A stretch of DNA of 44,139 nt from NCBI GenBank assembly GCA_002269645.1, contig NIVC01004495.1:1-44139 (forward strand), given 5' to 3'. The notes under the pieces are model-generated. The model had not been told where the DNA came from. It searched no databases and worked only from the letters and a program-made list of their open reading frames with translations. The translations under genes were made by a program, and so were the position numbers. Below are positions 2,703 to 39,300 of this stretch, one piece after another; position 1 is the stretch's first letter, and each line of letters starts with the position of its first letter. This DNA is from Macrostomum lignano. Taxonomy: Eukaryota.

Positions 2703-3484
2703 ATGCAACCAGCACCAAACTTTGGGGCCCGCCTGCCTCGGGACCTCGCCTTCCGTTGCGTGCTTGTCTGCACTGTGCTGGCCTGCATCCTGTACTTTGT
2801 GGCCTTCGTGACGCCCAACTGGATCGAGCTGAAGCCGGAGATGGAGAGCACCTTCCTCCGCCTCGGCCTGTGGACCGCCTGCTTCAAAGGCTACCTGCAC
2901 CCCGAGGACTATGTGTCCAAGGCCTACTACGGCTGCTGGTACATCTACTACCCGAGTACTACTACATCCGCAGCTGGCTGAACCCGCCCTGGTTCTACGC
3001 TGTGCAGATGCTGTCCATCCTCACCCTCATCTTCCTCATCATCGCCACAGTGATCGTCAGCCGCCTCGCCTGCCACCGCTACGTCTCCAAGCGGCGCATC
3101 GAGGAGCTGCCGGCCAATCTCAAGCAGCTCAAGCTGTGCGGCGCCATGCACCTGCTGGCCAGCTGCGCCATCCTCGTCCAGATCATCTTCGTGGGCCTGA
3201 ACAGCCTCGACCGGCGGTGGATGCCGCGGCCGGACTACAACCGGCTCGGCTTCTCCTACGCCTGCGCCTGCTTCGCCAACTTCGCCAGCTTCTTCGCGCT
3301 GGCCTTCACCGTCATCCGCTTTGTTGGAAAGTCCGAGGAGGAGCTGCTGTTCGCCGAGCAGCAGCAGCTCATTGGCGAGGACGACGCCGAGACTGCGGAC
3401 AAATTTGCGGCCGGGGCCTCCGGCATCGACAAGAAGTTCACCGCGGCCCGGCGGCCGGCCCCGCCCGAGGACAGCCTGGTGTAG
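2703..3484 (+). CDS. Claudin/PMP22-family four-TM protein (invertebrate septate-junction claudin-like), intronless CDS, apparent 1-bp frameshift at ~2951
   Basis: ORF 2703-2981 has TM1, W-x-E and the claudin signature GLWxxC...C. It joins ORF 2756-3484 at YIYY|PEYYYIRSWLNPPW if the ccc at 2951-2953 were cccc. Three more TM segments and an acidic tail follow. GC3 bias is strong. Confidence 0.85.
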
Positions 3485-3520: not shown

Positions 3521-3992
3521 TATGAAGTGACTCTACGGGGACTATGAAGTGACTCTACGGGGACTATGGAGTGACTCTACGGGGACTATGGAGTGACTCT
3601 ACGGGGACTAAGGAGTGACTCTACGGGGACTATGAAGTGACTCTACGGGGACTAAGGAGTGACTCTACGGGGACTATAGAGTGACTCTATGGGGACTAAG
3701 GAGTGACTCTACGGGGACTAAGGAGTGACTCTACGGGGACTATAGAGTGACTCTATGGGGACTAAGGAGTGACTCTACGGGACTAAGGAGTGACTCTACG
3801 GGGACTAAGGAGTGACTCTACGGGGACTATGGAGTGACTCTTGGAGGACTCTATGGGGACTCTTGAGTGACTCTATGGGGACTATAGAGTGACTCTATGG
3901 GGACTATAGAGTGACTCTATGGGGACTATAGAGTGACTCTATGGGGACTATAGAGTGACTCTATGGGGACTATGGAGTGACTGTGCGGGGAC
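3521..3992. repeat. 22-bp minisatellite (tatggagtgactctacggggac), ~21 copies, degenerating to ~4070
   Basis: Tandem units visible directly, starting ~35 bp after the claudin stop codon. Confidence 0.95.
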
Positions 3993-5634: not shown

Positions 5635-8600
5635 TCAGTATCCTGGCATGTCCAGTGGCTGCTTCCCGAGCCACATCACCCAGAGCAGCTCCACCAGCAG
5701 GACGAGCCCACCGCACACGTACAGGCCCAGGCAGATGATGTAGGCGCCTCCGACACCCTCCAGCGATATGGCCGCCGCCTGAGCAGCCGCGTTGCTGCCG
5801 CCGCAGTCGTTGCTCTGCGGGACGTACTTCCGAGTCACAACATCCACGACGCCGCTCTCCTTGCCGCGCTGAAGACTGCAGAGTTGGGAGGAGTCAGCTA
5901 CTTTAATGGTTTTGAGAATTCACAGGTTTTCGCTTTTCTGGCCTTCTTGGAGGTATCAGCCCCAATAAACCCCCGCTTTGCACTTCAGATCAAAGTTTTA
6001 ATTTCGGCGTATCATTCTCTGCAACGACACACTTCGCACAGAATGTGTACAGTTTGTTTGCATTGCATAAAAACCAGAAGGAATGCGGAATGAAGAAAAC
6101 GTACAGCAAGTCGAACGCCGGCAGGTAATAGGCATCTCTGGGAAACGTCATCGCCTGGTAGTAATAGTTAAAAAGGCTGGTGGCCTGGTACACCTGGCTG
6201 CAGAATGCGCTGGCATAGAACGAGTTGCTGCTCTTGTCCGAGATGCACACCATGTACGGGTCGGCGTCCTTAATCAGCAGCTGGAATGGTCGGCATCAAT
6301 GATATCTATAGCTAATTAGGACCCCATGCATTTTATACAACAGAACAGCCAACAAAGAACCAGGGCATCAGCTCACGGTTTCAGCGCAGGTAGTCATTGT
6401 GTCTACGACAACCATCTGCCTGCGCAGCAAAGCCATGGGTCCGTCAGTTGCCAGCATGATAGTCGCGTAGATGTTGGTGCCCCGGGCAACCATGGCCTTG
6501 TAGTGCGGCATGGAGACCAGGTCTTCCAAGCTTTGGATCGGGTACTCGGCCACCGTCACAGCCAGCTTGGCCGTGAGGTCCCCTGTCCGGTAAGAGAAAA
6601 ACAACAGTAAAATGACGCCGATAACTCACGGCTATCAAGACAAAACTTTGGGTTGTAGCCTACTAGGGGGTTATAGTCTAATGGCTAGAACATCGGACTC
6701 ACGACCGAAAGGTCAGGGGTTCGATTCTCGATCCACCCGGAACAATTTGTGTCCTTGAGCTAGACGCTTAACTCTGCAATGCTTCAGTTCACCCAGCTGT
6801 AAAATGGGTGCCAGCATTAGCTGGGGTAATTGAAAGTGTGTGGCAATCCCTCAGTCCTTGAACTGAACAGCTGTACTCAGCCTTCAGATGCGCCGCGCAA
6901 TAGCTGCGGCTGAGCTGTCGGTTGCACACCTGCCCAGGCAGGTGTAATCAATTAATATTACGTATTGAAAAGACAATGCAGACGTCAGCCTCACCTGTGT
7001 ATGCGCCATAGAGAATAACGGTGAGCATCCACCAGAAGGCCAGAACAGTGCGGGGGCTCATAGCGAAGGGATAGAAGTCCTGGCCCTGCTGCAGGAAGCT
7101 GCCAATCACTGACCAGATGTACTCCTTCAGCCACACCTCATCGGCAAACGCGTACGAGATGCGTAGATTCCACCCGGAGAACGGATTGCAGCTGGCGAGC
7201 ACAAACACGATGATGGGAACGAAGACGAGCATGCCGAGAATGAGCAGCCAGGAGTCCCAGGCCAGCGGCGTGAACACATTCCACAGCTTGGACTCTGATG
7301 GCGGCCGCTTCACCAGAATGGTGTTGGCGGAGAACATGTAGTCCTCTGAGTAGTCGATCACTTGGTAGCGAATGTTGGTGATGGCAAACGGCATGGCAAA
7401 CTCGGCTTCCTGGGAAGAAGGCAACGAGAACAGAGTTTCAGACTGTCAATTCGAGCAAACTGTACTTTATAACATAAATTATCATTAAGCAGGCGCTGTC
7501 CTCACTCCTCTCTGCAGCATGCCGATGCAACCGCTGAAGTAGGGCGATCCTTCGACCGGCGCTCCGAACTGGATATCCGGTGGGGAGAAAATGTCATACC
7601 TGCCGCAATGAAGGTCAATAAGTTTCTGTACTCTATAATGCAACGGAGAATGAGTTGAGGCTCAATGCAAATCTGATTCAGACATACGAAAAATTCAGAT
7701 GCGAGGCATAATAGTTGACCATATCCACCGAGTGGCCAGAAGCCGTGCCAAAGGTGTAGTTGCTGTACCTGGTGAAAGGCGGGAACTGGTTGGGAAAATG
7801 GGACTCGTTATTAGATAAGGTTTATTATTAAAATGTTACAACTACTTTATCACTAACATAAATAACGTCCCGAAATAATTATTTGTTACTTTTTCTTATC
7901 TGAAGAAACAAGCAATGCCCTTCATACCATTTTACGAGCGTAATCCCAATTTCTTATTATGAAGTAAAACATCAAGTCTTCAGCTATTCGTGACTAACCG
8001 GCGGCGCGCAGACCCGCAGTCGAGCTCCCTTGAAGTCCACGAAGGTGTTGGGAAACAGCAGCTCGCGCTCCTTGTACTCGAAGGTCACTACAAGGCTGCC
8101 GTTCTCGACGATAAACCGGCCGCTTGGCACGAGTTCCGCGACTGCGTCCGGGTTGCTGAGCAGGCCCAGCATCTCCAGGAAGTAGTCGCTCCGGTGCCCC
8201 GCACTTCCGTTGGCTGGGCTGAGCCGCTGCTATGAGGCATGCCAGGAAATATGGGGTTAAGCATTAATTACAAGAAGCCGTGCTTCTATTAGGGCAATTA
8301 AGCTTTGCTTTCTGTTCTCTGATTCAGCTATTAAGTATGCCGGTGTAAAGCAAACTCAACCACAAATTGCACATGTCGCTAAGAATCTGAGTCAGACAGG
8401 CAACTGAACTCCAACCTGCTTCAGCTGCGCAGCCACTGCGGGACCCGCCGACCACGGCTGCAGCGGCCGACACGACGCGTTGCTGGCGGTCAGGCCGAGG
8501 TCGGAGCTGTCCAGCAGGCTCTGTGTAGCTCTGGCGAATGACAGCACGGCCTCCAACGCCTTCAGCTCCAGCATCTGAGGGATGTTCAGGGTCTACTGCA

Positions 8601-9908
8601 GATAGATCGCCAGCGCCTAAGCTCCATCGCAGAAGAAGTTTGCAGGGAACGAGTTCCTCACCGAACGCTTGCTGAACTGGCAGTCCGGATACACGACTCC
8701 GAGATCTACAGAGCAGTCCATTTCTTTGAGAAGAACTGTCGACTCACGGATCAAGAGGATGTTCGCAGACTCATTCGCGGGGATCAGAGTCTCGATAGTT
8801 CTTGGCGAAATTCCTGTGTCAATCACAGTCCAGAAGTAGTTGATCTGCAGTGTGGCTGTGTTCCGAGCCTGGAATGACAACCAAATGATATTAAGCCCTA
8901 ATCGATTGCGCGAAAGAATTTGTACCTGAGCTCACCTGCTCGAAGACGAGTGGGATCTTGTCGGGCTCGCAGACGACCACACAGTATCGAATCTGAGCCT
9001 TGACGCTGTTTTGCAGGATTTGGGTCAAATTGGTGGCCCATTCGTCGAACTGAAACATCACGCTGGCGATTCTCTTCTCCGAGAGCAGTTGCTGAAGCTG
9101 CTCAAGCAGCAAGTGGTCTGCAATGACGAGTGTTAGCCACCATGGTTGAGGAAGGCATTGCTGTCAACTTACAGATGGAGCAGTAGTCTTGAGGAAGCCA
9201 TGCGCACCCTGTTGTCTGTCGTGAAGGACAGCGACCAGATTAGCGGAGACTCGGTCCATTGCTTCTGCGGTCGCCCTCAAGAAGTCGGTCGCCAGTGGAC
9301 TCGACACGATCGCTGAGTCTGTAAAGATATGCGATTCATTCTTGTCTGTGATGTAAGCAAGTGTGCGTCAGTAGATAGGTTGTGGTAATAAGGGTTTTAC
9401 CTGGCACACTGGGTAGCCGACAAAGGCCTCTGAGAACTGCGACTGTCGGTAATTGTAGGGAGCCAGAGATTTTGAGCACATCCGAGACGAACTGACAAGA
9501 GCCGACGACGACCAAGCCGTTGAGACCTGTCGATCGACACACTGAAGTTTCAGAAGAGATTTTCCGGGTAAGCAAGCAAGTCGTCGTTGAACCTAATCAG
9601 CTATTGATTGTCACCAAAGTACATAATTTTCTTTCTTAGAATTCTACAATAAATTTGTATCTCAAGCTGTTTTTACCTCTCTGCGCAGCCTCCACTGAGT
9701 CCGCAGTCGGCAGCAGCTCCAGCGACATCGGACTGGTCTTGAATGCCGGATACCTCCAGTTTCCGTTGACCAGCTTGTCCACCGCTGTGGTGATGATCGA
9801 ACTGTCCGCGAGACTTCCGGCTTCGCTCACAACAGCCAGGCGCACGGATGACCCGCTGCAGGCGTGCAGGGCCAGCAGGAGCAGCAGCGTTCGCAGCTCG
9901 TGCCACAT
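5635..9908 (-). CDS. IR-A: ionotropic glutamate receptor / Ionotropic Receptor-like subunit with ATD, 13 exons, ~830 aa, frame intact
   Basis: Exons traced by GT-AG with consistent phase: 9908-9677, 9541-9401, 9318-9208, 9117-8936, 8868-8662, 8574-8416, 8229-7999, 7785-7688, 7599-7506, 7409-6995, 6582-6377, 6280-6105, 5875-5635. Motifs: signal peptide, S1 PFAITNIRYQVIDYS, M1, pore SFLQQG, M3 FWWMLTVILYGAYTGDLTAKL, S2, M4 LEGVGGAYI. Confidence 0.92.
6666..6955 (+). mobile_element. tRNA-derived SINE, copy 1 (intron 10 of IR-A, antisense to host)
   Basis: tRNA-like head with A-box- and B-box-like motifs (ggttcgattc), central tgtgtccttgagc...cccagctgtaaaatgggt domain, and 3' tail gcaatagctgcggctgagctgtcggttgcac shared with the copies at 16052 and 21754. 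Confidence 0.85.
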
Positions 9909-10079
9909 GACTGACTTAAAGATCGCGTGTGTGAGAGCCGCGAGCCGCTGCCGGAGTGGGACACTGGAGCTATTTATTGAGATCTTACTGAACTGAATCC
10001 GGTTTTGGTATCAGATGTTTCCGATCGATCAGAGGCTGGTTATTCAACTGCAGTCTCATTAAGTAAAAATGGAAAGGTT
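7999..10079. repeat. ~2.08-kb block (IR-A exons 1-7, introns 1-6 and ~170 bp upstream) nearly identical to 22147-24214
   Basis: Direct comparison shows about 20 substitutions in the 1263 coding nt, with alignable introns and unrelated flanks. Confidence 0.95.
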
Positions 10080-12905: not shown

Positions 12906-15485
12906 ATGCGTGACCGGAATTGGAAAAAGGGCTTCATTTTTGTTGCTTTGCTGCTCTGCTCGCTGGCAGCCGGCCAGGTCTCCCAGTGCGCTCCCGCTGA
13001 CTCTCCGCGGCTCCGCTTCGTGGCGCAGCTCAGCGTGAACGGCTGCGCGCTGTTCGTGCACGACACGGGAGCGAGCGACGGTCCGCACTTGGCAGTCGAG
13101 CCGCTCATGTGCGTGACGGACAGCCTGAGAGGCATTGCTGCTCGATTCGACTTCATCACCCAGCAGCTGTACTTCAGCGTTCCTGTATTGATGAGGGATG
13201 CTGGGATGCTCGCAGATGCTCAGCGTCAACTGCGGCATCTGTCACCGAGGTCTGTGAGCTTCGCCACGGTCACCAACATCAGCGTCTCAGCCGACTTCAG
13301 CTCATTAATCCGGGTTTCTGACATCCTGTGGACTCCAGATGAACCAATCGCCACCCTGAGACTGCAAATTGAGAAGAGGGCCCGCAGCAGTGTGTGCCAA
13401 GCTGCAAGCAACTTGAGACTGGCAAATGTGCCTCGAATGCAAAGTCTGAGTTCATTAGAAATCCAGCCAGAGCAGAATGCCAACTTTAGAAGTTCGCCCG
13501 GCGAGGCCCTTGAAAAAGTTAGGCTGTCAGCTTCTATCATTTCGAACGGCTCTTGCTATGAAGTTCAGAGACACGTCCTGCTGCAAAACAGCAGCTTCTT
13601 CGACTTGGAATTCGGCAGACAAAGATTTGCAAATGTGTCGAATTGCCGACAGCTTCGGTTCATCCGCTCCGTCAATCTCGAGAACTGCTCAGTCCGAGTG
13701 CACCAGAGACTCGACATGAAGGGCCACTTCCTCATCGAGCCTCTGCTGTGCCACAACATCTCCAGCTTGAGCAGCGAGTCAGTCAGGTATGACTATAGCC
13801 GAGACATGCACTACCTGAAGCTGGATGTGGTGCTGCAAGATGAGGCCACACGCGATGCTGTGAGGACTCAGCTGGCCGACCTGTCGCCTCGATCGGTCGA
13901 TTTTATGCGGCTGTGGACTGCTGAGAGATCGGTGAGCTCCTCGTTGAGTTCTCGGTTCGAGGTCGGTCCGCTGATGGTGTCGACAGACTGGAAGTCCGCT
14001 CAGCTGCGGCTGCTCTGCGGAAGCTCGGGGCTGTGCGACGAACTCAGGTTTGATAATTGCTTGGAGAAACAGAAACAGAATTCACTTTACCTCACGACAG
14101 TTCTTTAAAATTCTGAGTGTTTTATTTGCCCAGTTGCCCTGATGTCTCACAGACCCTAAGGACCCCGTTTCAATGGGTCTTTCCAAATTCAAAATTCATG
14201 TCAACCAGTTCATTTCATTTCAAATGAATTTTTTTTGGAATATAACAGTGAAAAGCATTCGTCTTAAGAAAACTGAAATGGTTGACCTTTTTAGTGGCCC
14301 TCAAGAATTGCTTTAATTATTGTTTTCAGAGGTTACGCGTATTTTGGTGTTGTATTGCAATCTAAAAACTCCGCTGAATTTCAGATCGGCGGTGCTGAAT
14401 GAGCCCGCGGATTTGTGGCGACACCTGAGGTGGCGGGTGACGTCTCTGGTTGCTGACCAGTGCCGATCCGAGTCGGTCCAGACAACTTTATCATGGAGAA
14501 TGAAGGCGTCGGCAAGTGCGAGCTGCTCGAGTCCGCAGTCATGCGCCGCCGCTGACTCTTCTTACGCGCTTCAAGTTCAGCGAGACGGCCGCTGCTTCGT
14601 AAAGATTCAGCAGCGACTCACCGGCAGAGTGAGTTTCCAACGAGGCTGGACTGAGTACGAGACTGGCTTCGGTGACGGCACTGACTTCTGGATCGGTGAG
14701 CGGCCGCTTCGCGTTCGCAGCTCTGCTAACAGAGATAAAGCGTCTGCTTCATAACAAAGCTGATAAATTTGGCTGCACTGGCGCCTGGCAACCTGATCCT
14801 TCTCCCTTCCTCTCTTTCCCATCCCGCCTCGTTGCAGCCAGCCGCTGAGAATGCAGCAAGGTTTACTACCCTATTCAACATGTAAATACGATCACGAACT
14901 TAAACCAACCAAGGCAATTTACATTCTCCTGTGATCCAGTGAAAGCTCCGATTCGAAGGACAGTAGCCATACAATTTATGTTCGTTTTCGTCTGTTTTAC
15001 AGGTGTGTCACTAAAATGCCTGACCAATCAGAAGTGACCCAGACTCTGCCGCTTAATTTCTTCCCACAGGCCTCTCCACCATCCACTTGCTGAGCCAGGG
15101 CGGCGTCACTTTCAGATTGGAGATGAAGCTCTGGAACGGCTCTGAGCTGCATGCGGAGTACGCGGGATTCCAGGTGGGAGATGCCAGCACTGGGTATCGG
15201 ATGACGTACCGAGAGATGCTGAAGAGCAGGTCCAGTTTGAACTATGATGAACTGCAGAAAAACTCAGGAATGCGGTTTTCCACAATAGACAGGGACAATG
15301 ACGAAAGCAACCCAGGGTCATGCACAAACAGGTATGGAAAAGGAGGCTGGTGGTTTCGAGACTGCAACCACTCCAACCCGAACGGGATTTTTCCTGTGCG
15401 GGAGACGGCAAATAACAGCTATATGACCTGGTGGTGCGAGACTTGGCTGTATCTCCGTGAAGTGCGAATGCTGCTGCAGATATGA
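12906..15485 (+). CDS. Secreted fibrinogen-related domain (FReD) protein, 3 exons, ~622 aa, with two N-terminal ~214-aa repeats of unknown family
   Basis: Exons 12906-14047, 14385-14695 and 15070-15485 join in frame at GT-AG sites (phases 2 and 1). Signal peptide FIFVALLLCSLAAG. Fibrinogen C-terminal (FBG) domain motifs IQQRLTGRVSFQRGWTEYETGFG..FWIG, FSTIDRDND and GGWWFRDCNHSNPNG. Confidence 0.9.
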
Positions 15486-17449: not shown

Positions 17450-17962
17450 TCCATTGCTCATTCTGCTGTCTGTAGTCATGAACAATTCCTGTTCCATTGC
17501 TCATTCTGCTGTCTGTACTCATGAACAATTCCTGTTCCATTGCTCATTCTGCTGTCTGTACTCATGAAAATTTTAGTTCCATTGCTCATTCTGCTGTCTG
17601 TACTCATGAACAATTCCAGTTCCATTGCTCATTCTGCTGTCTGTACTCATGAACAATTCCTGTTCCATTGCTCATTCTGCTGTCTGTACTCATGAACAAT
17701 TCCTGTTCCATTGCTCATTCTGCTGTCTGTACTCATGAACAATTTTAGTTCCATTGCTCATTCTGCTGTCTGTACTCATGAACAATTCCAGTTCCATAGC
17801 TCATTCTGCTGTCTGTACTCATGAACAATTCCAGTTCCATTGCTCATTCTGCTGTGTGTACTCATGAACAATTCCAGTTCCATTGCTCATTCTGCTGTCT
17901 GTACTCATGAACAATTCCAGTTCCATTGCTCATTCTGCTGTCTGTACTCATGAACAATTCCA
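17450..17962. repeat. 43-bp minisatellite (tccattgctcattctgctgtctgtactcatgaacaattcctgt), ~12 copies
   Basis: Units start at 17451, 17494, 17537 and so on. Confidence 0.95.
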
Positions 17963-19529: not shown

Positions 19530-22500
19530 TCAGTATCCGGGCATATCGAGCGGGTCCCTCTGCAGCCTGACCACCCAGAACAGCTCGATCAGCAGGATGA
19601 CACCGCCGCACAGGTAGAGCGACAGACTGACGATGTAGGCGCCACCCACACCCTCCAGCGGGATGGCTGCGGCCTCAGCGGCGGCCGTGTTGACGTTGCA
19701 ATCGCTTGTCGAAGGAATGAACTTGCGAGTCACCACATCGACAAAGCCGCTCTCCTTGCCGCGCTGCAGTCTGTAGGGTTCGAGTTTTTGGCGTGACTTT
19801 ACATGTTCTGGTTCAAGGTTCGGTTGTGGCACTTAGTTCTGTGGTGGTTCAAGGTTCGGGTGTGGCACTTAGTTCTGTGGTGGTTCAAGGTTCGGGTGTG
19901 GCACTTAGTTCTGTGGTGGTTCAAGGTTCGGTTGTGACACTTAGTTCTGTGGTGGTTCAAGGTTCGGGTGTGGAATATCGTTCTGTGGTTCGAGGTTCGG
20001 TTGTGGAATGTCGTTCTGTGGTTCGAAGGTTGGTTGTCGCTTGCAAGTATTTGAAGCCAAAAAATCGTAAAATTAATGCACAGCCGAGTAAGTTTTTTTC
20101 ATATGGCACTATACATGTAATAAAGCCAAGAAGCTATAACCAAAGTCTAGCGGAGATGGCTTCAATGCAATTTAACAGCTGGAGGTAGCTATATCCAAGA
20201 AAATTAAAATATATTGAAAGAGCATGAAACTTACAGAAAGTCAAATGCTGGAAGGTAGTAGACATCCTGTGGAAAAGTCATAGCCAAGTAGTAAAAGTTG
20301 AAGAAATTTTTGGCTTGGTAAACCTGCTTGCAGAATGCGCTGGCGTAATAAGAATTGCTGCTCTGGTCTGAGACGCACACCAGGTACGGGCTCGCGTCCG
20401 GCTTGAGGAGCTGAGGGTAAGTTCGGTGAAGTGCTTTTTCAGATCCTAACTGAGAGCCTCAGGCTTTGTTGATTTCATCGAGTGTAAATAAATCTAAAAC
20501 CATGTCAGTCAGACTCACAGTCTCGGCGCAGGTGGCCATTGTGTCAACAAGCTCCATCTGTTTGCGTAGCATGGTCAAGGGACCTTCCGTCGCCAGCATG
20601 ATTGAGCCGTAGATGTTGGTGCCCTGGGCAACCATGGCCTTGTAGTGCGGCCTGGCGATCAGATCCTCCAAGCTCTCGATCGGGTACTTGGCCACCGTCA
20701 CAGCGAGCTTGGCCGTGAGGTCCCCTGAAGGAAAGGGATAGAAAACGCACTAACATTTGATCAACTGCAGATTTGATAGAACAGCCTAGCTTAACCACCT
20801 GTATATGCTCCAAAAATGACTACTGTGAGCATCCACCAGAACGCCATGACAGTTCGAGGACTCATCGAGAACGGGTAAAAGTCCTGGCCCTGCTGCAAGA
20901 AGCTGCCAATGACCGACCAGACGTATTCCTTTAGCCAGACTTCGTCAGAAAACGCATAAGGCAAGCCCAAAGTCCAGGCGCTAAAGGGACTGAGCTTGGC
21001 GAAAATGAAGATAACGACTGGAACAATGACGAACATGGCAATAATGAGCAGCCAAGAGTCCCAGGAGAGCGGCGTGAACACATTCCACAGCTTGGACTCT
21101 GGTGGAGGCATTTTCACTAGGATGGTGTTAGACGAGAACTGGTACTCATCCGAGTAGTCGACTACTTTATGGCGGAAAGTAGTAGTAGCGAACAGCATCG
21201 CGAAATCCGCTTGCTGAAAGACAGAAACAGATTCAGTCACTCAGTGTGTTGAATTCATTTGGAAGTACGCTCGTATGTTCACTGCGCTCACTCTTTTCTG
21301 CAGCATGCCGATGCAGCCAGTAAAGTAGGGTGAGCCCTCCACTGGTGCCCCGAACTGGTTATCCGGCGGAGAGAACAGGTCGTACCTTCAAATTGAGGCA
21401 TAAAAAATGAAGCATATTTTCATCTAGAGATGACTGATGAAAAATAATATGGCTTACGTAAAATTGAGGTGCCTGGTAAAGTAGCTAAGCATTTCGACCG
21501 AGTGTCCAGAAGCTCTGCCAAATGTGTAGTTCTCGTAGACCGTGTAAGGTGGAAACTGGATTGGTTCGTGCAGAGTATCAGCTTAGCATGCAGAAAAGAT
21601 AATTAAATCATGCCAGTTTTGCTTCAGTATATGAATTACTGTCATTTCCAGCGTTTCACTGTTTGTGCAACTGTATGAATCGAACACTACTTCATTAATC
21701 CAAGCACAATTTAAAACAAAATTAAGCTTCATCAGACAACCTCAGCATCTTCAGGGGGGTCGTAGCCCAGTGGGAGAGCGTTTGACTCACGACTGAAAGG
21801 TCGGGAATTCGATTCTCGACCCGCTCGAAACAAGTTGTCTTTGAGCATGAACAATAAAACATAACTCTGCATTGCTTCAGTTCACAAAGATGAAAAATGG
21901 GTACCAACATTAGCTGGGATAATTCAGGGTGAGTGGCGATTGAGAGTCCTTGGACTGAACAGCCGTACGCAGCATTAAGAGGCGCCGCGCAATAGCTGCC
22001 GCTGAGCTGTCGCTTGACCATTGGGGCATGGGTAATCAATTATTATTATTTAAGATCTGCACCAAAAGAGATATTTGATTGAAAGTAAATTCGAGAAACG
22101 CTCATGAGGCAAAAGTTACATATTTCGCTGAAAAGAAAGCCCTTACCGGCGGCGCGCAGACTCGCAGTCGAGCTCCCTTGAAGTCCACGAAGGTGTTGGG
22201 AAACAGCAGCTCGCGCTCCTTGTACTCGAAGGTCACTACAAGGCTGCCGTTCTCGACAATAAACCGGCCGCTTGGCACGAGTTCCGCGACTGCCTCCGGG
22301 TTGCTAAGCAGGCCCAGCATCTCCAGGAAGTAGTCGCTCCGGTGTCCCGCACTTCCATTGGCTGGGCTGAGCCGCTGCTATGAGGCATGCCAGGAAATAT
22401 GAGGTTAAGCATTAGTTACAGCCGTGGTTCCAGTACGCTTTGCTTTCTGTTCGCTGATTCAGCTATTAAGTATGCCGGTGTAAAGCAAACTCAACCACAA

Positions 22501-24042
22501 ATCGCACATGTCGCTAAGAATCTGAGTCAGACAGGCAACTGAACTCCAACCTGCTTCAGCTGCGCAGCCACTGCGGGACCCGCCGACCACGGCTGCAGCG
22601 GCCGACACGACGCGTTGCTGGCGGTCAGGCCGAGGTCGGAGCTGTCCAGTAGGCTCTGTGTAGCACTGGCGAATGACAGCACGGCCTCCACCGCCTTCAG
22701 CTCCAGCATCTGAGGGATGTTCAGGGTCTACTGCAGATAGATCGCCAGCGCCTAAGCTCCATCGCAGAAGAAGTTTGCAGGGAACGAGTTCCTCACCGAA
22801 CGCTTGCTGAACTGGCAGTCCGGATACACGACTCCGAGATCTACAGAGCAGTCCATTTCTTTGAGAAGAACTGCCGACTCACGGATCAAGAGGATGTTCG
22901 CAGACCCATTTGCGGGGATCAGAGTCTCGATAGTTCTTGGCGAAATTCCTGTGTCAATCACGGTCCAGAAGTAGTTGATCTGCAGTGTGGCTGTGTTCCG
23001 AGCCTGGAATGACAACCAAATGATATTAAGCCGAATCGATTGTGCGAAAGAATTTTTACCTGAGCTCACCTGCTCGAAGACGAGTGGGATCTTGTCGGGC
23101 TCGCAGACGACCACACAGTATCGAATCTGAGCCTTGACGCTGTTTTGCAGGATTTGTGTCAAATTGGTGGCCGACTCGTCGATCTGAAACATCATGCTGG
23201 CGATTCTCTTCTCCGAGAGCAGTTGCTGAAGCTGCTCAAGCAGCAAGTGGTCTGCAATGACGAGTGTTGGCCACCATGGTTGAGGAAGGCATTGCTGTCA
23301 ACTTACAGATGGAGCAGTAGTCTTGAGGAAGCCATGCGCACCCTGTTGTCTGTCGTGAAGGACAGCGACCAGATTAGCGGAGACTCGGTCCATTGCTTCT
23401 GCGGTCGCCCTCAAGAAGTCGGTCGCCGGAGGACTCGACACGATCGCTGAGTCTGTAAAGACATGCGATTCATTCTTGTCTGTGATGTAAGCAAGTGTGC
23501 GTCAGTAGATAGGTTGTGGTAATAAGGGTTTTACCTGGCACACTGGGTAGCCGACAAAGGCCTCTGAGAACTGCGACTGTCGGTAATTGTAGGGAGCCAG
23601 AGATTTTGAGCACATCCGAGACGAACTGACAAGAGCCGACGACGACCAAGCCGTTGAGACCTGTCGATCGACACACTGAAATTTCAGAAGAGATTTTCCG
23701 AGTGAGCAAGCAAGTCGTCGTTGAACCTAATCAGCTATTGATTGTCACCAAAGTACATAATTTTCTTTCTTAGAATTCTACAATACATTTGTATCGCAAG
23801 CTGTTTTTACCTCTCTGCGCAGCCTCCACTGAGTCCGCAGTCGGCAGCAGCTCCAGCGACATCGGACTGGTCTTGAATGCCGGATACCTCCAGTTTCCGT
23901 TGACCAGCTTGTCCACCGCTGTGGTGATGACCGAACTGTCCGCGAGACTTCCGGCTTCGCTCACAACAGCCAGGCGCACGGATGACCCGCTGCAGGCGTG
24001 CAGGGCCAGCAGGAGCAGCAGCGTTCGCAGCTCGTGCCACAT
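19530..24042 (-). CDS. IR-B: iGluR/IR-like subunit with ATD, 13 exons, ~830 aa, frame intact
   Basis: Same exon lengths and phases as IR-A. Exon 1 24042-23811; exon 7 ends 22147; exons 8-13: 21555-21458, 21385-21292, 21213-20799, 20724-20519, 20410-20235, 19770-19530. Confidence 0.92.
19805..20030. repeat. 36-bp minisatellite in intron 12 of IR-B, ~6 copies
   Basis: Unit gttctgtggtggttcaaggttcgggtgtggcactta. Confidence 0.9.
21754..22050 (+). mobile_element. tRNA-derived SINE, copy 3 (intron 7 of IR-B, antisense to host)
   Basis: Head gggggtcgtagcccagtgggagagcgtttgactcacgactgaaaggtcgggaattcgattc; same body and tail as the other two copies. Confidence 0.8.
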
Positions 24043-24214
24043 GACTGACTTAAAGATCGCGTGTGTGAGAGCCGCGAGCCGCTGCCGGAGTGGGACACTG
24101 GAGCTATTTATTGAGATCTTGCTGAACTGGAGCCGGTTTTTTGTATCAGATGTTTCCGATCGATCAGAGGCTGGTTATTCAACTGCAGTCTCATTAAGTA
24201 AAAATGGAAAGGTT
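22147..24214. repeat. Partner of block 7999-10079 (IR-B exons 1-7 plus upstream sequence)
   Basis: Near-identity starts at the last base of exon 7 and ends at ...aaaatggaaaggtt. Confidence 0.95.
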
Positions 24215-24896
24215 CTAACGAGATCAGGCGATTTTCAAGGCAGCATAAGATGGGATGTGTTCTGTACTACATCCTGATGTCTGTCTTTGCAGCCAGAAAG
24301 ATCTCACCTTTTTCGGATAACAAGCTTGAGTCGATTGGGTTTCCAGTTACAGCTATTTAGTCGCGGTGCTGTTGGTCCGGTGGCAAAACACCCGCGGTAG
24401 CAGGGGCTCAGGACTGCTGAGTTCCGCATCTCTATGAAATAGAATCTTCCGCAGGGCTTGGCAACCTTCAAATTGCCTGGCTTCACCTTCGATATCTTAT
24501 TTAATGAGGTTCGCTTCAGCGATCGGGTTTCTCATTGTCCACGCGGGACTTTTCCTTCATCAAACCTAAAGAACGCTGGTTTTTTTATTTTAGTAGTAAC
24601 ATCCAAGGTCACTATTGGTACGAAAGGGTATTTCCTGAAACAACCCCGTAAAAGCAAGAGCTCAAATTAAAGCTAAATTTGGCGCATCGAATGCAAACAG
24701 GGATGCTAGAAATTGGAAAAACTCTTTAAGTAGAAAATATTTTTAAGCTCACGCAGGCGAGACGCAAAGAAAGGGGCGACGGCGCCACGACTTTCGCCAA
24801 AATACTTGTAGTACAGTTATAAAAAGGTAAAAAAAGATTATCCTAGATCATGTGGCTTTTACTTTTTAAGTTTAATAACGTTTTAAGCATCATATA

Positions 24897-25500
24897 GCAC
24901 GCAGAGACAAGCACGCAGAGACAAGCACGCAGAGACAAGCACGCAGAGACAAGCACGCAGAGACAAGCACGCAGAGACAAGCACGCAGAGACAAGCACGC
25001 AGAGACAAGCACGCAGAGACAAGCACGCAGAGACAAGCACGCAGAGACAAGCACGCAGAGACAAGCACGCAGAGACAAGCACGCAGAGACAAGCACGCAG
25101 AGACAAGCACGCAGAGACAAGCACGCAGAGACAAGCACGCAGAGACAAGCACGCAGAGACAAGCACGCAGAGACAAGCACGCAGAGACAAGCACGCAGAG
25201 ACAAGCACGCAGAGACAAGCACGCAGAGACAAGCACGCAGAGACAAGCACGCAGAGACAAGCACGCAGAGACAAGCACGCAGAGACAAGCACGCAGAGAC
25301 AAGCACGCAGAGACAAGCACGCAGAGACAAGCACGCAGAGACAAGCACGCAGAGACAAGCACGCAGAGACAAGCACGCAGAGACAAGCACGCAGAGACAA
25401 GCACGCAGAGACAAGCACGCAGAGACAAGCACGCAGAGACAAGCACGCAGAGACAAGCACGCAGAGACAAGCACGCAGAGACAAGCACGCAGAGACAAGC
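24897..25500. repeat. 14-bp satellite (gcacgcagagacaa), ~43 apparently perfect copies
   Basis: Direct tandem repeat; I saw no variant unit. Confidence 0.97.
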
Positions 25501-31589: not shown

Positions 31590-33260
31590 CCATGCAAGAA
31601 TGGCATTCTTGCACTCTTTTGCGTGCAAGAATGGATGTCTATGGTAAAATCTCACTGAAAAAGCATTAGGCGCAGAAATGCATTCCTGCACGGTTTTGTG
31701 CATTCCTGCACGATGAATCATCCGACAATGGAATTCCTTCACGTTCACTCGTGCGTGAAGGACATCGTGCACTCGTGCGCTAGCGCGCACTCGTGCAGAT
31801 GTCATTCCCGCACTCGTGACCGTGCAGGAATATAGCATTCTTATTTGATTCTGCGTGCAGGATTGCTGATCTGGCACGCCCAAGCGTGCAGAATTGATGT
31901 TGTCTATGGCAAATTATCCTTTAGGTCTAATGCATCTTACGTGCAGGATTGCAATTTATTTTTAGACAACAAGAAAACAACGAGTGAAAATTGGTTAATA
32001 TCATTACTATTTTTTCGCTTGCGATCAGATGCTACTCAAATACAAATTCAATGACGTTGGTGTCACCATTGGCTCGAATCTTCAAATTCTTCCGATTTTC
32101 CGGAATAACTCGCACACAGCGCACCGAGCCCGACGTAGGATCATTGATAACGTCAACTAGGTCACTTGCCTCAGTGCCTACAACTTGAGGGTCGGCCGTA
32201 GTAGCCACCTCCACGGCAGCCGTTAGTTGATGGCTCATAGCACAGATCGCTTGCTCTCGTTTATTCCCTCGTCGAATGTAGCGCTCGACGGATGCACCTC
32301 GCTTGTGGCCAGTCACTTTAGCGATAGTTTCGACATTAAATCCAGCGTCGTGAAGTTCTGTGATTACAGTTGCACGCACACAATGCGCAGTGTATGGCTT
32401 GGACAATCCGGCGGACGTAGAAATTTTCTTCATCAGAGGCCCAAGGGTGTTGACTCCTACTGCACTCTTGCTGTACGAGCTCGTACCACTTACCAGATGA
32501 ACGAAAGTTAGCGTTTGGTCGCAGAAAGAAGTCCACTCCGTTCCATCCTTCAACTTCGGTGACCTTTTGCTTGTACAGTCTGAACGCCTCAACTGGGCAT
32601 TTGGCAGAATCTCCCTTTGACACCATCAACGCTTGCTTGTTGTCAACCATGACGGCGACGCTGGTAGAACCATGTAGATTCTTTGAATCTCCCTGAACAA
32701 GCTCAATCGCGTAGAGTCCATTGGCGAGCCGCTTCTCACAAAACCGATCAAACCTCAAACCACGCAACCATTCACGGCCTCTATTCCCATAGTAATAAAT
32801 GACGTTAAAGTATACTTCCTCTTGAAGACGCACCGGATTCGACCGATCGAAGTATTTACCGAGCTTCTTCAGGTCGTCACTCTCAATAGCATCGTAGTGC
32901 TTCACTCTTCCTCCAGATCGAAGGAAAGCGTTGCAAATGTTTTTATAGTGGCAACTAGCTTTCAATTGTAATCTCCTTTCGTTACCCCCTCCCCTCTTCA
33001 TCTCCAGCGTGCAAGATTGATTTTGTCTATGGTTAAAATGTGGGGGCTTCGCCCCCACGCCCCCAGCGGGGCTCTGCCCCCGCACCCCCGCTAGCAGCGG
33101 GTAATGTCTATAGTAATATCAATTATAACCTCCTTTTTTGGGCAGAATTTAAAATGGAAGAATCAAATAAGAATGAGATTCATGCACGCCAACTCGTGCG
33201 TCTATGGCAAAGAGCACTCGTGCGCTTCGCGCACTCGTGCTTTTGCCAATGACGCACTCG
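31590..33260 (-). mobile_element. Crypton-like tyrosine-recombinase (YR) DNA transposon; boundaries approximate
   Basis: YR ORF bracketed by clusters of cactcgtg and tgtctatgg motifs; no long terminal inverted repeats seen. Confidence 0.7.
32032..33001 (-). pseudogene. Tyrosine recombinase (Crypton/DUF3504-type), frameshifted by a 10-bp insertion at ~32477-32486; ~319 aa if repaired
   Basis: Overlapping ORFs 32336-33085 and 32032-32592 give EDLKKL-like DDLKKL, YGNRGRE (R), DSKN (K), CPVEAFRLY, YTAHCVRAT (HxxR), VTGHK (H) and SVERY (Y). Confidence 0.85.
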
Positions 33261-33524: not shown

Positions 33525-33920
33525 ATGACTCATGTGCTATCTAAGGAACTATTCATGGCTCATGTGCTATCTAAGGAACTATTCATGGCTCATGTGCTAT
33601 CTAAGGAACTATCCATGGCTCATGTGCTATCTAAGGAACTATTCATGGCTCATGTGCTATCTAAGGAACTATCCATGGCTCATGTGCTATCTAAGGAACT
33701 ATTCATGGCTCATGTGCTATCTAAGGAACTATTCATGGCTCATGTGCTATCTAAGGAACTATTCATGGCTCATGTGCTATCTAAGGAACTATTCATGGCT
33801 CATGTGCTATCTAAGGAACTATTCATGGCTCATGTGCTATCTAAGGAACTATTCATGGCTCATGTGCTATCTAAGGAACTATCCATGGCTCATGTGCTAT
33901 CTAAGGAACTATTCATGGCT
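33525..33920. repeat. 30-bp minisatellite (atggctcatgtgctatctaaggaactattc), ~13 copies
   Basis: Direct tandem repeat. Confidence 0.95.
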
Positions 33921-34813: not shown

Positions 34814-35452
34814 TTGCCTCAAGCACTCAAACACTCGGCTACCTGATGCAGGGTTGCCTCAAGCACTCAAACACTCGGCTACCTGATGCAGGGTTGCCTC
34901 AAGCACTCAAACACTCGGTTACCGGATGCAGGGTTGCCTCAAGCACTCAAACACTCGGTTAACGGATGCAGGGTTGCCTCAAGCACTCAAACACTCGGCT
35001 ACCTGATGCAGGGTTGCCTCAAGCACTCAAACACTCGGTTAACGGATGCAGGGTTGCCTCAAGCACTCAAACACTCGGCTACCTGATGCAGGGTTGCCTC
35101 AAGCACTCAAACACTCAGTTACCTGATGCAGGGTTGCCTCAAGCACTCAAACACTCGGTTACCTGATGCAGGGTTGCCTCAAGCACTCAAACACTCGGTT
35201 ACCTGATGCAGGGTTGCCTCAAGCACTCAAACGCTCGGTTACCTGATGAAGGGTTGCCTCAAGCACTCAAACACTCGGTTACCGGATGCAGGGTTGCCTC
35301 AAGCACTCAAACACTCGGTTGCCGGATGCAGGGTTGCCTCAAGCACTCAAACACTCGGTTACCTGATGCAGGGTTGCCTCAAGCACTCAAACACTCGGTT
35401 ACCTGATGCAGGGTTGCCTCAAGCACTCAAACACTCGGTTACCTGATGCAGG
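34814..35452. repeat. 40-bp minisatellite (acctgatgcagggttgcctcaagcactcaaacactcggtt), ~16 copies
   Basis: Direct tandem repeat with few variants. Confidence 0.95.
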
Positions 35453-36177: not shown

Positions 36178-36311
36178 AACTGAGTCACTTGCTCCAATGT
36201 CAGCAACTGAGTCACTTGCTCCAATGTCAGCAACTGAGTCACTTGCTCCAATGTCAGCAACTGAGTCACTTGCTCCAATGTCAGCAACTGAGTCACTTGC
36301 TCCAATGTCAG
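36178..36311. repeat. 27-bp minisatellite (aactgagtcacttgctccaatgtcagc), ~5 copies, just downstream of the IR-D stop
   Basis: Direct tandem repeat. Confidence 0.93.
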
Positions 36312-36354: not shown

Positions 36355-39300
36355 TTAAAAACCCGGAAAATCCAGCGGCTCGTTCCTTAGTTTGAACACC
36401 CAGAAAAGCTCCACGAGCAGGATGACGCCGCCGCACACGTAGAATGCTAGACTGACGATGTAGGCACCGCCAACGCCCTCCAGGGGGATGGCCGCAGCCT
36501 CAGCAGCCGCGCTGACGGCGGAGCCGCACTCGGCAGTCTGGGGATGTACTTGCCAGTGATCATGCTCATGACGCCGTTCGCTTTGCTTCTCTGAATCCTA
36601 AAAGAAAAAAAAACTGCTCCATTCAGAACTGTTTGAGAGTAAAAACATTTCAAAAATTCTCTTCCTAAAATTCCATCCATCATGCATTCGCTGACAACCT
36701 GAGACTAAACTACAGAACTTCTGAGCTCCAAGCCGTCAGCCATTCAGGCCAACTCACAGGAAGTCAACCGCGGGCAGGTAGTAAGCGTCCTGAGGGAAGG
36801 CCATGGCCATAAAGTACGGGTTGAAGTAGTTGTCGGCGTTGTAGATGTCTTCGCACAGCTCGTTGGCGTAGTGCAGACTAACAATCAGATCCGAAATGCA
36901 CACCAGGTATGGGTCCTTGATGGTCACCAGCTGCGCGATTCGAGGAATACGAAGACTATTTTTAAAATTGGATTCGCATTTTCGCAAGCAAACACTCTTT
37001 GTTCAAATTTGAAAAACGCTACGCTGAATTGACGCATCAAATCCAAAACTACAAGCCAAAGCAATCATCGCTGGACTTACATTCGTAGCGCAGGTGTCGA
37101 AGGAGTCAACTAACTCCCACTGATCCCTAAGCTTGGCAAGCGGCCCCTCTGTGGCGCTCAGCACAGCAGCGTAGATGTTGGTGCCTCTGGGCAGCATGGC
37201 CTTGTAGTGCGGCTTGGAGATGAGATCGTCCAAGCTCTGGATTGGGTACTTGGCCACAGTCACTGCCAGCTTGGCCGTGAGGTCACCTGCAAATGAGAGT
37301 CCCTGTATTGCTGCATGGTTTCATGCATTGCTGACAAGTCACAGACGCACCAAACTTACCAGTGTACGAAGCGAATATGATAACCGTCAACATCCACCAG
37401 AAAGCCATCACCACTCGAGGACTCATGGCAAAGGGATAAAAGTCCTGACCCTGCTGCATGAAGCTGCCAATCGCTGACCAAATGTAATCCTTCAGCCAGA
37501 CCTCGTCAGCAAAGGCGAAGCTGAGTTGAAGGTTCCAGCCAGTGAATGAGCTGCTGCTAGCCAACCCGTAGATGAGAAGCGGCACTACCAAAAACATGCT
37601 CACAATTAGAGTCCAGGAATCCCAGTAGAGCGGCGCAAACACATTCCACAGCTTGGACTCGGCCATGGGTCTTTTCACCAGAATGGTGTTGGAGGAGAAA
37701 ATAAACTCTTCTGAATAGTCAATCACCTGCGACCGGATCAACGTGGTGGCAAAGGGCGTAGCAAAGTCGGCCTCCTGCAATTCGTCCGCGGACCGTTTCC
37801 AGCTTAATGTAGTCTCTATTCAGCATATTTATTTCTCGCAAAAGGAAAAAACAAGGGCACTCACTCCCTTCTGAACCATTCCGATACAGCCTGTGTAGAA
37901 GAGCGAGCCAGGGACTGGAGCCCCAAACTGGTTGTCTGGGGGCGTAAAAATCGTGTAACTGAAAGTAAAAAAGTGTTTCCGATTAAAATAAAAATTTGAG
38001 ATTCAGCTGTTCGACTTAAATAACATCAACATCTCTTAAATCGGCATTACCTAAAATTCAGATGTTTTGAAAAGAAAGCTGCCAGATCAGCAGTGATACC
38101 CGAGGCAACGCCAAAAGTTCCGTTTGAGTACTCAGTTTGTGGTTTCGTCTAAAATGCGAAACAATGCGAAACAAATGCGAAACAAAGAGGACACGACAGT
38201 TGGTTTACTAACAAGAAAAATCAACGAACCGCAACAGAACAAATCCGAATAGTCTTGTTCTTAAAGTCGATAAACGTGTTGGGGAAGATGAGGCTCCGAC
38301 CTCTGTAGCGGAAGCTGACCTCTAAAGAGCCGTTCCCTACAAAGAAACGGCCGCTGTTGACGAACCGGACCGGGTCGGAGAACTCGTCGTGGAACGTCGC
38401 CTGCACCTCCAGAAAGTAGTCGCTGGGTGTCCAGCTGCTCCCAGCTGACAGCGGCTGTCGCAGCTACAAAGGTGAACGGTTTCGACTGAGCAGACTGAGA
38501 CAGACGACATCATCCATGAGCACCTGCTCCGGTACGATCCGTACCTGCTTCAGCTGCGCAGCTAGTGCGGGACCCGCCGACCACGGCTGCAACGGCCGAC
38601 ACGACGCGTTGCTGGCAGGAAGACCGGAACTGTCCAGTAGGCTCTGCGTAGCGCTGGCGAACGACAGCACGGCCTCTACTGCCTTCATCTCCAGCATCTA
38701 CAGTCATGATCAGAGTCTGGGGCTGGTGACAGCGCCTAGAATCTATTGCAGAAGTGTGTAAATAAAGGCTTACCGAGTATTTTCTCATTTGGCAGTCCGG
38801 AAACACGGCCTTGAGCTGTGAGGTGCAACCGGCTGAGGCCGTTTTCAAGTCTATGGGCGACTCTCGGATCACAAGAATGTTTGCAGACTCGTTTGTAGGG
38901 AGCAGGTCCTCGATGGACACAAGTCGAACTCCCGTGTCGATCACTGTCCAGAAGTAGTTGAGTTTCAGTGTGCCCGTGTTCCGAGCCTGTGTTGAGAAAG
39001 GCTCTAATGAATTAACATGCTCTTAGTGAATGCCAGGATAGGTATAAAGTGTGCCAAAAACAATTATGAATTCGCACCTCTCGTAAAACGGCGTTGACAT
39101 TTTCAGGCGTGCACAGAACCAATGTGTTTCGATAACGCTTCCAAACGACGTTTCTCAGTATGCTGGTCAGGTTGCTTGCTGAGTCATCGATTTGGAAAGT
39201 CAGGCTGGGGATGCTTTTATCCGATAGCAGTTGCTGCAGCTTCTCCAGAAGACGGTGATCTGCAATCAGATTAGAGAGCTTGTGAGACTCACACTGCAAA

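Follow-up and report, generated by a model that had tools for sequence, protein, structure and literature searches.

Two tandem copies of a candidate new extracellular domain precede a fibrinogen-related head in a protein family of the flatworm Macrostomum lignano

Among the recognition systems of invertebrates, fibrinogen-related lectins form a main arm, and the parts fused before the lectin head account for much of their variety. The established partners of fibrinogen-related domains (FReDs) are collagen (ficolin), coiled coils (angiopoietin, fibrinogen), modules of the immunoglobulin superfamily (IgSF; snail FREPs) and EGF/FN3 modules (tenascin). In the design of the snail VIgLs, IgSF modules carry fibrinogen (FBG), C-type lectin or galectin heads (PMC5433772). 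The architectures of FReD proteins and their diversification have been described (PMC7588048), and the diversity of the snail VIgL genes arises through gene conversion together with point mutation (PMC5433772, PMC7588048). The present study concerns a stretch of 44,139 nucleotides from the flatworm Macrostomum lignano (GenBank assembly GCA_002269645.1, contig NIVC01004495.1, positions 1 to 44,139 of the forward strand, referred to as the window) and a gene at 12906–15485 on its plus strand. The favored explanation, which is held with moderate confidence, is that this gene encodes a secreted, glycosylated and disulfide-bonded M. lignano lectin in which two copies of a new domain are followed by a fibrinogen head.

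The gene is intact and consists of three exons that encode a protein of 622 amino acids without an internal stop. Exon 1 (12906–14047) contains the start codon, the signal peptide, the first repeat unit and most of the second; it was identified by its open reading frame (ORF), the GT donor at 14048 and tblastn. The long ORF at 12906–14108 extends beyond the exon, and its coding part ends at the GT donor after position 14047. Exon 2 (14385–14695) contains the end of unit 2 and the start of the FReD and is bounded by an AG acceptor at 14383–14384 and a GT donor at 14696, and exon 3 (15070–15485) includes the stop codon at 15483–15485. Both introns are of the GT..AG type, with intron 1 (14048–14384) located inside repeat unit 2 and intron 2 (14696–15069) inside the FReD. 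Only one splice combination was found that gives an open frame, which is uninterrupted over 1866 coding bases. A search for a second gene copy within the window (tblastn of the product) returned none, leaving one copy only.

The first-pass annotation of the sequence had claimed a duplicated N-terminal domain of ~214 residues, and the duplication was confirmed: the N-terminal two-thirds of the protein consist of two tandem copies of a ~200-residue domain. Repeat unit 1 (residues 31–244, 12996–13637, with a conserved core at residues 35–158) was delimited by internal alignment and by the alignment of all units (alignment A2), and it matches the hidden Markov model (HMM) of the family over residues 39–164 (E = 4e-40). 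Repeat unit 2 (residues 245–432, 13638–14538, spanning intron 1) matches the same model over residues 254–401 (E = 4e-58). Unit 1 is longer than unit 2 because of a ~24-residue insertion. The similarity between the units is far beyond chance by each of four methods: BLASTP of residues 36–119 against 250–333 (33% identity, E = 4e-12), hhalign of the two halves as paralog profiles (96% probability, E = 5e-9), phmmer of unit 2 against unit 1 (a match over 124 residues, E = 3.5e-13) and Smith–Waterman alignment of the two units (score 143 vs. 33.6 ± 5.8 in 2000 shuffles, z = 19, with 0 shuffles reaching 143). Every motif pair that the annotation had quoted is present in the translation. Within this protein alone the similarity of the two units spans ~85–124 residues and the sequences further out are too diverged to align, but the full unit of ~200–214 residues is backed by 28 full-period units of the family that align end to end and by the ~195-residue period of six-unit relatives, which upholds the proposed unit length.

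The distribution of the unit was determined by sequence searches. With the first 428 residues as query, 20 proteins were recovered (44–100% identity), all of them from M. lignano and all containing PF00147 without any other domain. An HMM search with the profile of the N-terminal region, exhaustive over 1.84 billion representative proteins, returned 13 clusters; all lie below E = 1e-10, and the interval from 1e-10 to 1e-3 is empty. Every cluster with a name belongs to M. lignano; one cluster (P0022) derives from a transcript-like contig in an SRA run (Logan) and another (P0026) from a JGI metagenome contig. The iterated HMM has a core of 149 positions and identifies 28 units in 11 non-redundant proteins. 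Two units followed by Fibrinogen_C are found in the gene studied here and in P0013, P0018, P0021, P0023, P0027 and P0028, a single unit followed by a fibrinogen domain in P0029 (452 residues), and six units at a period of ~195 residues followed by a C-terminal Lectin_C domain (Pfam) in place of Fibrinogen_C in P0022 and P0034. The six-unit C-type lectin proteins BOX15_Mlig001890g2, Mlig001546g1, Mlig001894g2 and P0022 display six HMM matches each (E = 1e-33 to 1e-49), and P0022 has a signal peptide and then a Ser/Thr/Pro-rich repeat N-terminal of the units. Because all named clusters are from M. lignano and the unit precedes either Fibrinogen_C or Lectin_C, the unit is, as read from these sequences, a lineage-restricted and putatively extracellular module that carries interchangeable lectin heads. 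The UniRef annotations PHM7_ext, EST3, SHR-BD and CAP10, attached to fragmentary relatives, were set aside: two are on out-of-frame fragments, and no unit matched any of these families.

In the M. lignano genome the family has expanded, in part as tandem copies. The paralogs BOX15_Mlig009453g1, Mlig019144g2, Mlig006198g1, Mlig006328g1, Mlig015699g1 and others share the architecture with 44–75% identity over the N-terminal region, but none covers the gene over its full length at >75% identity, and the first variable segment and the FBG loops (see below) are particular to this copy. The architecture had been proposed to be new, a claim that holds in part: the partner domain is undescribed and without a match to a known family, whereas the architecture itself is already present in public protein sets, where it has gone unremarked among >20 M. 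lignano proteins named 'Fibrinogen C-terminal domain-containing' (UniProt). Three family members lie head to tail on contig NIVC01001149.1 (L001 6698–16170), namely P0018, P0013 and a third copy. The N-terminal repeats of this third copy (13440–14582) are unannotated, and only a 132-residue fibrinogen fragment was called for it.

Within the unit alignment the conserved positions are G-C, EPLxC, SVxF, LRLxC-x5-C..L and a tail cysteine. The cysteines co-occur in pairs across the 28 units: both members of the first pair are present in 20 units and neither in eight (0 discordant), the second pair is complete in 23 and absent from four (one discordant), and the tail pair is complete in 17 and absent from six (five discordant). 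Such paired covariation typifies disulfide-bonded cysteines of extracellular domains. In this protein the predicted pairs are 47–69, 261–282 and 371–377. The N-terminal segment at residues ~7–28 is the sole hydrophobic 19-mer of the protein (Kyte–Doolittle 1.85); its basic n-region and small residues at –1 and –3, read from the sequence, mark a signal peptide at residues 1–23 (12906–12974) with a probable cleavage site between MRDRNWKKGFIFVALLLCSLAAG and QVSQ. The 622-residue protein contains nine N-glycosylation sequons, and 17 cysteines are left after the presumed cleavage of the signal peptide. The single hydrophobic segment, the nine sequons and the co-varying cysteine pairs support the prediction, made already in the first-pass annotation, that the protein is secreted. 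After assignment of the pairs given by family covariation and by FBG homology, C28, C164 and C607 are left unpaired among the mature cysteines and could form inter-chain disulfides for oligomerization; C28 is kept in most close paralogs and absent in P0018.

A Pfam scan of the protein identified Fibrinogen_C as the single domain, with no match in residues 1–440, and neither the 28 units, even at E ≤ 10, nor seven relatives gave a recurring Pfam match in the repeat region. Weak single matches to CBF_beta, Rpb2_4, HopW1-1, CbiX and DUF6707 did not recur and were treated as noise. Since no corresponding Pfam match was found in this protein or its relatives, the repeat is not an Ig, EGF, FN3, collagen or coiled-coil region, as had been proposed from its dissimilarity to the established FReD partners. 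Profile searches of PDB sequences with two alignments (A1 and A2) returned nothing below E = 0.2. An AlphaFold model of both units built from eight close paralogs reached a predicted local distance difference test (pLDDT) value of 38 and was discarded. A model of unit 2 (residues 245–444) based on the 28-unit alignment reached a pLDDT of 88.3 and a pTM of 0.79, with all five models at 86–88. The model shows a globular, mixed alpha/beta fold with eleven strands and four helices, none of which is longer than 13 residues, and the last 30 residues are disordered. The repeat had been described as cysteine-containing and beta-rich; the cysteines are there, and the predicted unit is beta-rich in part only. 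A Foldseek search of the model against 350,542 PDB chains gave no match at E ≤ 0.001, and the best PDB matches, antibody Fabs with template modeling (TM) scores of 0.17–0.21, were rejected as noise. A confident match of the repeat to a domain known alongside FBG was thus looked for in Pfam, in PDB sequences and by Foldseek in the PDB and was not found.

The only structural neighbor was returned by Foldseek against BFVD, where a single protein matched: the uncharacterized 417-residue protein A0A7S7YF07 of Medusavirus stheno (E = 4e-4, probability 1.00), a giant virus of amoebae. The two are similar over 176 columns with a TM score of 0.49, a root-mean-square deviation of 5.6 Å and 16% sequence identity, and the known link between them is structural only. 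At 417 residues the viral protein is long enough for two such units. On the strength of the model, the unit is best described as a previously undescribed alpha/beta domain of ~200 residues, predicted to be extracellular and without a match in the PDB.

Alternatively, the unit might belong, as a strongly diverged member, to an extracellular alpha/beta superfamily that is already known, such as the ferredoxin-like or SEA-like sandwiches, and have gained an N-terminal beta-hairpin, in which case the family alone would be new and not the structural class. The order of elements in the model (beta-alpha-beta-beta...beta-alpha-beta at residues ~49–166), read by eye, seems to resemble that of beta-alpha-beta sandwiches. 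Mucin-like Ser/Thr/Pro stretches are a context in which SEA domains occur, and the six-unit protein P0022 contains such a stretch. Moreover, the BFVD neighbor indicates that the fold is not unique to flatworms. The low TM scores of the best PDB matches and the lack of PDB chains below the Foldseek threshold speak against this alternative, as do the empty profile searches of PDB sequences and the lack of a match to SEA or any other Pfam family among the 28 units; no SEA structure is among the Foldseek PDB matches. A distant membership in a known superfamily is given a minor but appreciable probability, and the unit is treated here as a candidate new domain.

The C-terminal FReD (residues 433–622, 14539–15482, spanning intron 2) was recognized in the first-pass annotation and is confirmed by a match to Fibrinogen_C (PF00147) at residues 445–619 (E = 2e-33, 116.4 bits vs. 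a cut-off of 22). Among solved structures the head is most similar to fibrinogen alphaE-C, ficolin-1/-2/-3, ANGPTL2 and FIBCD1 (E = 1e-21 to 1e-23, ~35% similar), and its Ca2+ motif and pocket cysteines also align with those of FIBCD1. The Ca2+ role of the DxDxD motif in FReDs is established from known structures, and the head keeps this site as DRDNDE (residues 558–563, 15288–15305), which aligns with the DxDxD of ficolin-1, ficolin-3, ANGPTL2 and fibrinogen-420. It also keeps the cysteine pair of the P domain that flanks the ligand pocket (C569 and C583, 15321–15365), which aligns with the pair of the ficolins, ANGPTL2 and fibrinogen-420. These features suggest that the head is a lectin that binds sugars or acetyl groups.

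Five close paralogs (loci L005–L008) were compared with the gene at the DNA level by a sliding-window analysis of synonymous (pS) and nonsynonymous (pN) divergence. In exon 1, residues ~27–72 and ~263–350 are highly similar (pS ≤ 0.15, pN ≤ 0.08), whereas residues ~147–205 are strongly diverged and include length changes (pS 0.51–0.65, pN 0.47–0.59), with intermediate values from there up to residue ~250. In exon 3, residues 485–525 are conserved (pS about 0.1, pN 0.01–0.05) and residues 535–622, the loops of the P domain, are not (pS 0.27–0.46, pN 0.20–0.42, pN/pS 0.6–1.2). The close paralogs are thus mosaics in which near-identical segments surround two divergent ones: variable segment 1 (residues ~147–235, 13344–13610, with insertions and deletions), which comprises the helical part and the tail of unit 1 and varies in sequence and length in the paralog alignment, and variable segment 2 (residues 535–622, 15219–15482), which comprises the P-domain loops of the fibrinogen domain. 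Because pS rises together with pN, the simplest reading is that constant segments homogenized by gene conversion or recent duplication flank variable cassettes that are older or unconstrained, and on this reading positive selection on point mutations alone does not account for the mosaic pattern.

Taken together, the favored explanation would assign a role to each part of the protein. The C-terminal FReD would act as the binding head for sugar or acetyl groups, with the Ca2+ motif and the pocket disulfide kept and the loops around the pocket diversified among the paralogs. The new ~200-residue domain would be a lineage-restricted building block that serves lectin heads as a stalk or as a scaffold for their presentation, placed in one or two copies before fibrinogen heads and in six copies before C-type lectin heads in a design like that of the snail VIgLs. 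The hypervariable helical segment of unit 1 may form a second diversified surface. By analogy with the snail proteins, an immune role of the protein is plausible.

Several observations weigh against this explanation or narrow it. The Pfam match of the head covers profile positions 36–217 of 221, which means that the N-terminal FBG subdomain is shortened. The residue that follows the second pocket cysteine is a His in the ficolins including ficolin-1, in FIBCD1 and in ANGPTL2, but it is an Asn in this protein, with a His one position later, and L, L, H, R, P, M or Y in the paralogs; because the pocket His is shifted and variable among the paralogs, the ligand of the head is not predictable. Within the variable segments pS reaches the level of pN, so that old divergent cassettes combined with gene conversion, or relaxed constraint, fit at least as well as positive selection. 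The novelty of the fold was assessed by Foldseek against the PDB and BFVD only. Finally, literature searches returned nothing on this M. lignano family, be it on expression, localization or binding, and a matrix, adhesive or reproductive role is considered as plausible as an immune role.

The last point bears on the possibility that the lectin-like extracellular product of the gene functions outside immunity, in the matrix, in mucus, in adhesion or in reproduction (in seminal fluid, in the egg coat or in interaction with sperm), such that the rapid divergence of the paralogs would result from sexual or ecological selection and not from pathogen recognition. FReDs also occur in matrix and signaling proteins, and the closest relatives of solved structure include tenascins, MFAP4 and angiopoietin-like proteins. 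Lineage specificity and fast evolution, as seen in this family, are typical of reproductive proteins as well. None of the findings made here contradicts such a role, but the combination of one module with two types of head and diversified loops is, by analogy, the pattern of the immune VIgLs of snails (PMC5433772, PMC7588048). A non-immune role is given a minor but appreciable share of the probability, below that of the secreted lectin with two copies of the new domain.

A more far-reaching interpretation is that the family is a flatworm counterpart of the snail VIgLs built on a non-immunoglobulin scaffold of new, lineage-specific fold with exchangeable lectin heads. Two variable cassettes, formed by the helical segment of unit 1 and by the pocket loops of the fibrinogen domain, would be shuffled by gene conversion among paralogs that are homogenized elsewhere and so give rise to a diversified repertoire of non-self receptors. 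This interpretation is considered unlikely at present. If the mosaic variable cassettes are functional, they would represent a new system for the germ-line diversification of receptor families. M. lignano is a free-living flatworm model with established RNAi and transgenesis, which would make the family a tractable candidate recognition family, and the unit is a candidate for a new Pfam family and a target for structure determination.

Across the gene the window is ~98.6% identical at the DNA level to contig NIVC01003610.1 of the same assembly (GCA_002269645.1), with 93–99% identity in neighboring blocks. The frame of that copy shifts at residues ~235–237 (L004 9890–9902, corresponding to ~13605–13620 of the window), which represents either an assembly indel or a real allele, and because of this shift its product BOX15_Mlig024225g2 (P0017) is annotated as a protein of 352 residues that starts at an internal Met. 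The P0017 protein differs from the product of the window at one residue, and the peptides that span the two exon junctions (GLCDELR/SAVLNEP and DFWIG/LSTIH) are identical in P0017 and conserved in all paralogs. That the locus represents a paralog in decay or in faulty assembly and its 622-residue product a read-through artefact, as this frame change and the fragmentary or frameshifted models of several database relatives might indicate, is highly improbable in view of the fully open frame and canonical splice sites of the window copy, the full-length paralogs with the same architecture and junctions, and a pN well below pS in the conserved segments.

The remainder of the window contains repeats and fragments of other genes. 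A claudin/PMP22-like ORF is located at 2756–3484 (plus strand), and two exon-like ORFs of a ligand-gated ion channel (iGluR-type Lig_chan) are located 30 kb apart at 6948–7424 and 37283–37780 (both minus strand). Overlapping ORFs at 32032–33085 (minus strand) match Phage_integrase (tyrosine recombinase, E = 2e-7) and, weakly, DUF3504, and look like the remnant of a Crypton/DIRS-type tyrosine-recombinase mobile element. Two segments of ~2.1 kb each (7994–10079 and 22142–24214) have a second, non-collinear match in NIVC01003610.1 (L004, 97% identity), as would be expected of a dispersed repeat or of local duplication in the surroundings of the gene. Minisatellites are present at 3521–3992, 17450–17962, 19809–20022, 24896–25500, 33525–33920, 34814–35452 and 36178–36311 (periods of 22, 43, 36, 14, 30, 40 and 27 bp); the array at 24896–25500 consists of 43 perfect copies of 14 bp and creates spurious long ORFs on the minus strand, and the 30-bp array gives rise to a false Pentapeptide match.

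A comparison with the known FReD systems places the M. lignano protein apart from each of them. Angiopoietins and fibrinogen chains have a long N-terminal coiled coil, whereas the N-terminal region of the flatworm protein consists of the predicted globular alpha/beta units with their short helices. Tenascins and FReMs differ in their EGF and fn3 domains, for which no Pfam match was found in the flatworm protein, its relatives or the units. The ficolins, FIBCD1 and the tachylectin-5-type lectins share with it a head that is ~35% similar, the conserved DxDxD motif and pocket cysteine pair, and secretion (predicted for the flatworm protein). Unlike the ficolins, the flatworm protein has no collagen-like stalk (no Gly-X-Y run in the translation and no Collagen match in Pfam), and unlike FIBCD1 it has no transmembrane or coiled-coil segment; relative to both, it has a shortened N-terminal FBG subdomain, and the His that follows the second pocket cysteine is displaced or exchanged for another residue. 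The six-unit C-type lectin proteins of M. lignano contain the same ~195-residue unit, but six units and Lectin_C instead of two units and Fibrinogen_C.

The snail VIgLs (Biomphalaria FREPs, CREPs and GREPs) resemble the flatworm family in several respects: they are secreted, with one or two N-terminal modules followed by a C-terminal lectin head, they combine one module with alternative heads (fibrinogen or C-type lectin), and their gene family is expanded and lies partly in clusters, with a diversification that has been ascribed to gene conversion together with point mutation (PMC5433772, PMC7588048). The module of M. lignano is not an IgSF domain but has a predicted alpha/beta fold and a length of ~200 residues instead of ~100, there is no coiled-coil interceding region, and the two systems belong to a flatworm and to molluscs. 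No Ig-family Pfam match was found in the protein or in the 28 units, and because the defining IgSF domain is absent the flatworm protein is not a member of the VIgL family. The likeness is therefore one of functional analogy only, and a module paired with two kinds of lectin head would mean that the 'variable module plus lectin head' design of the snails was invented a second time, independently, in the flatworm.

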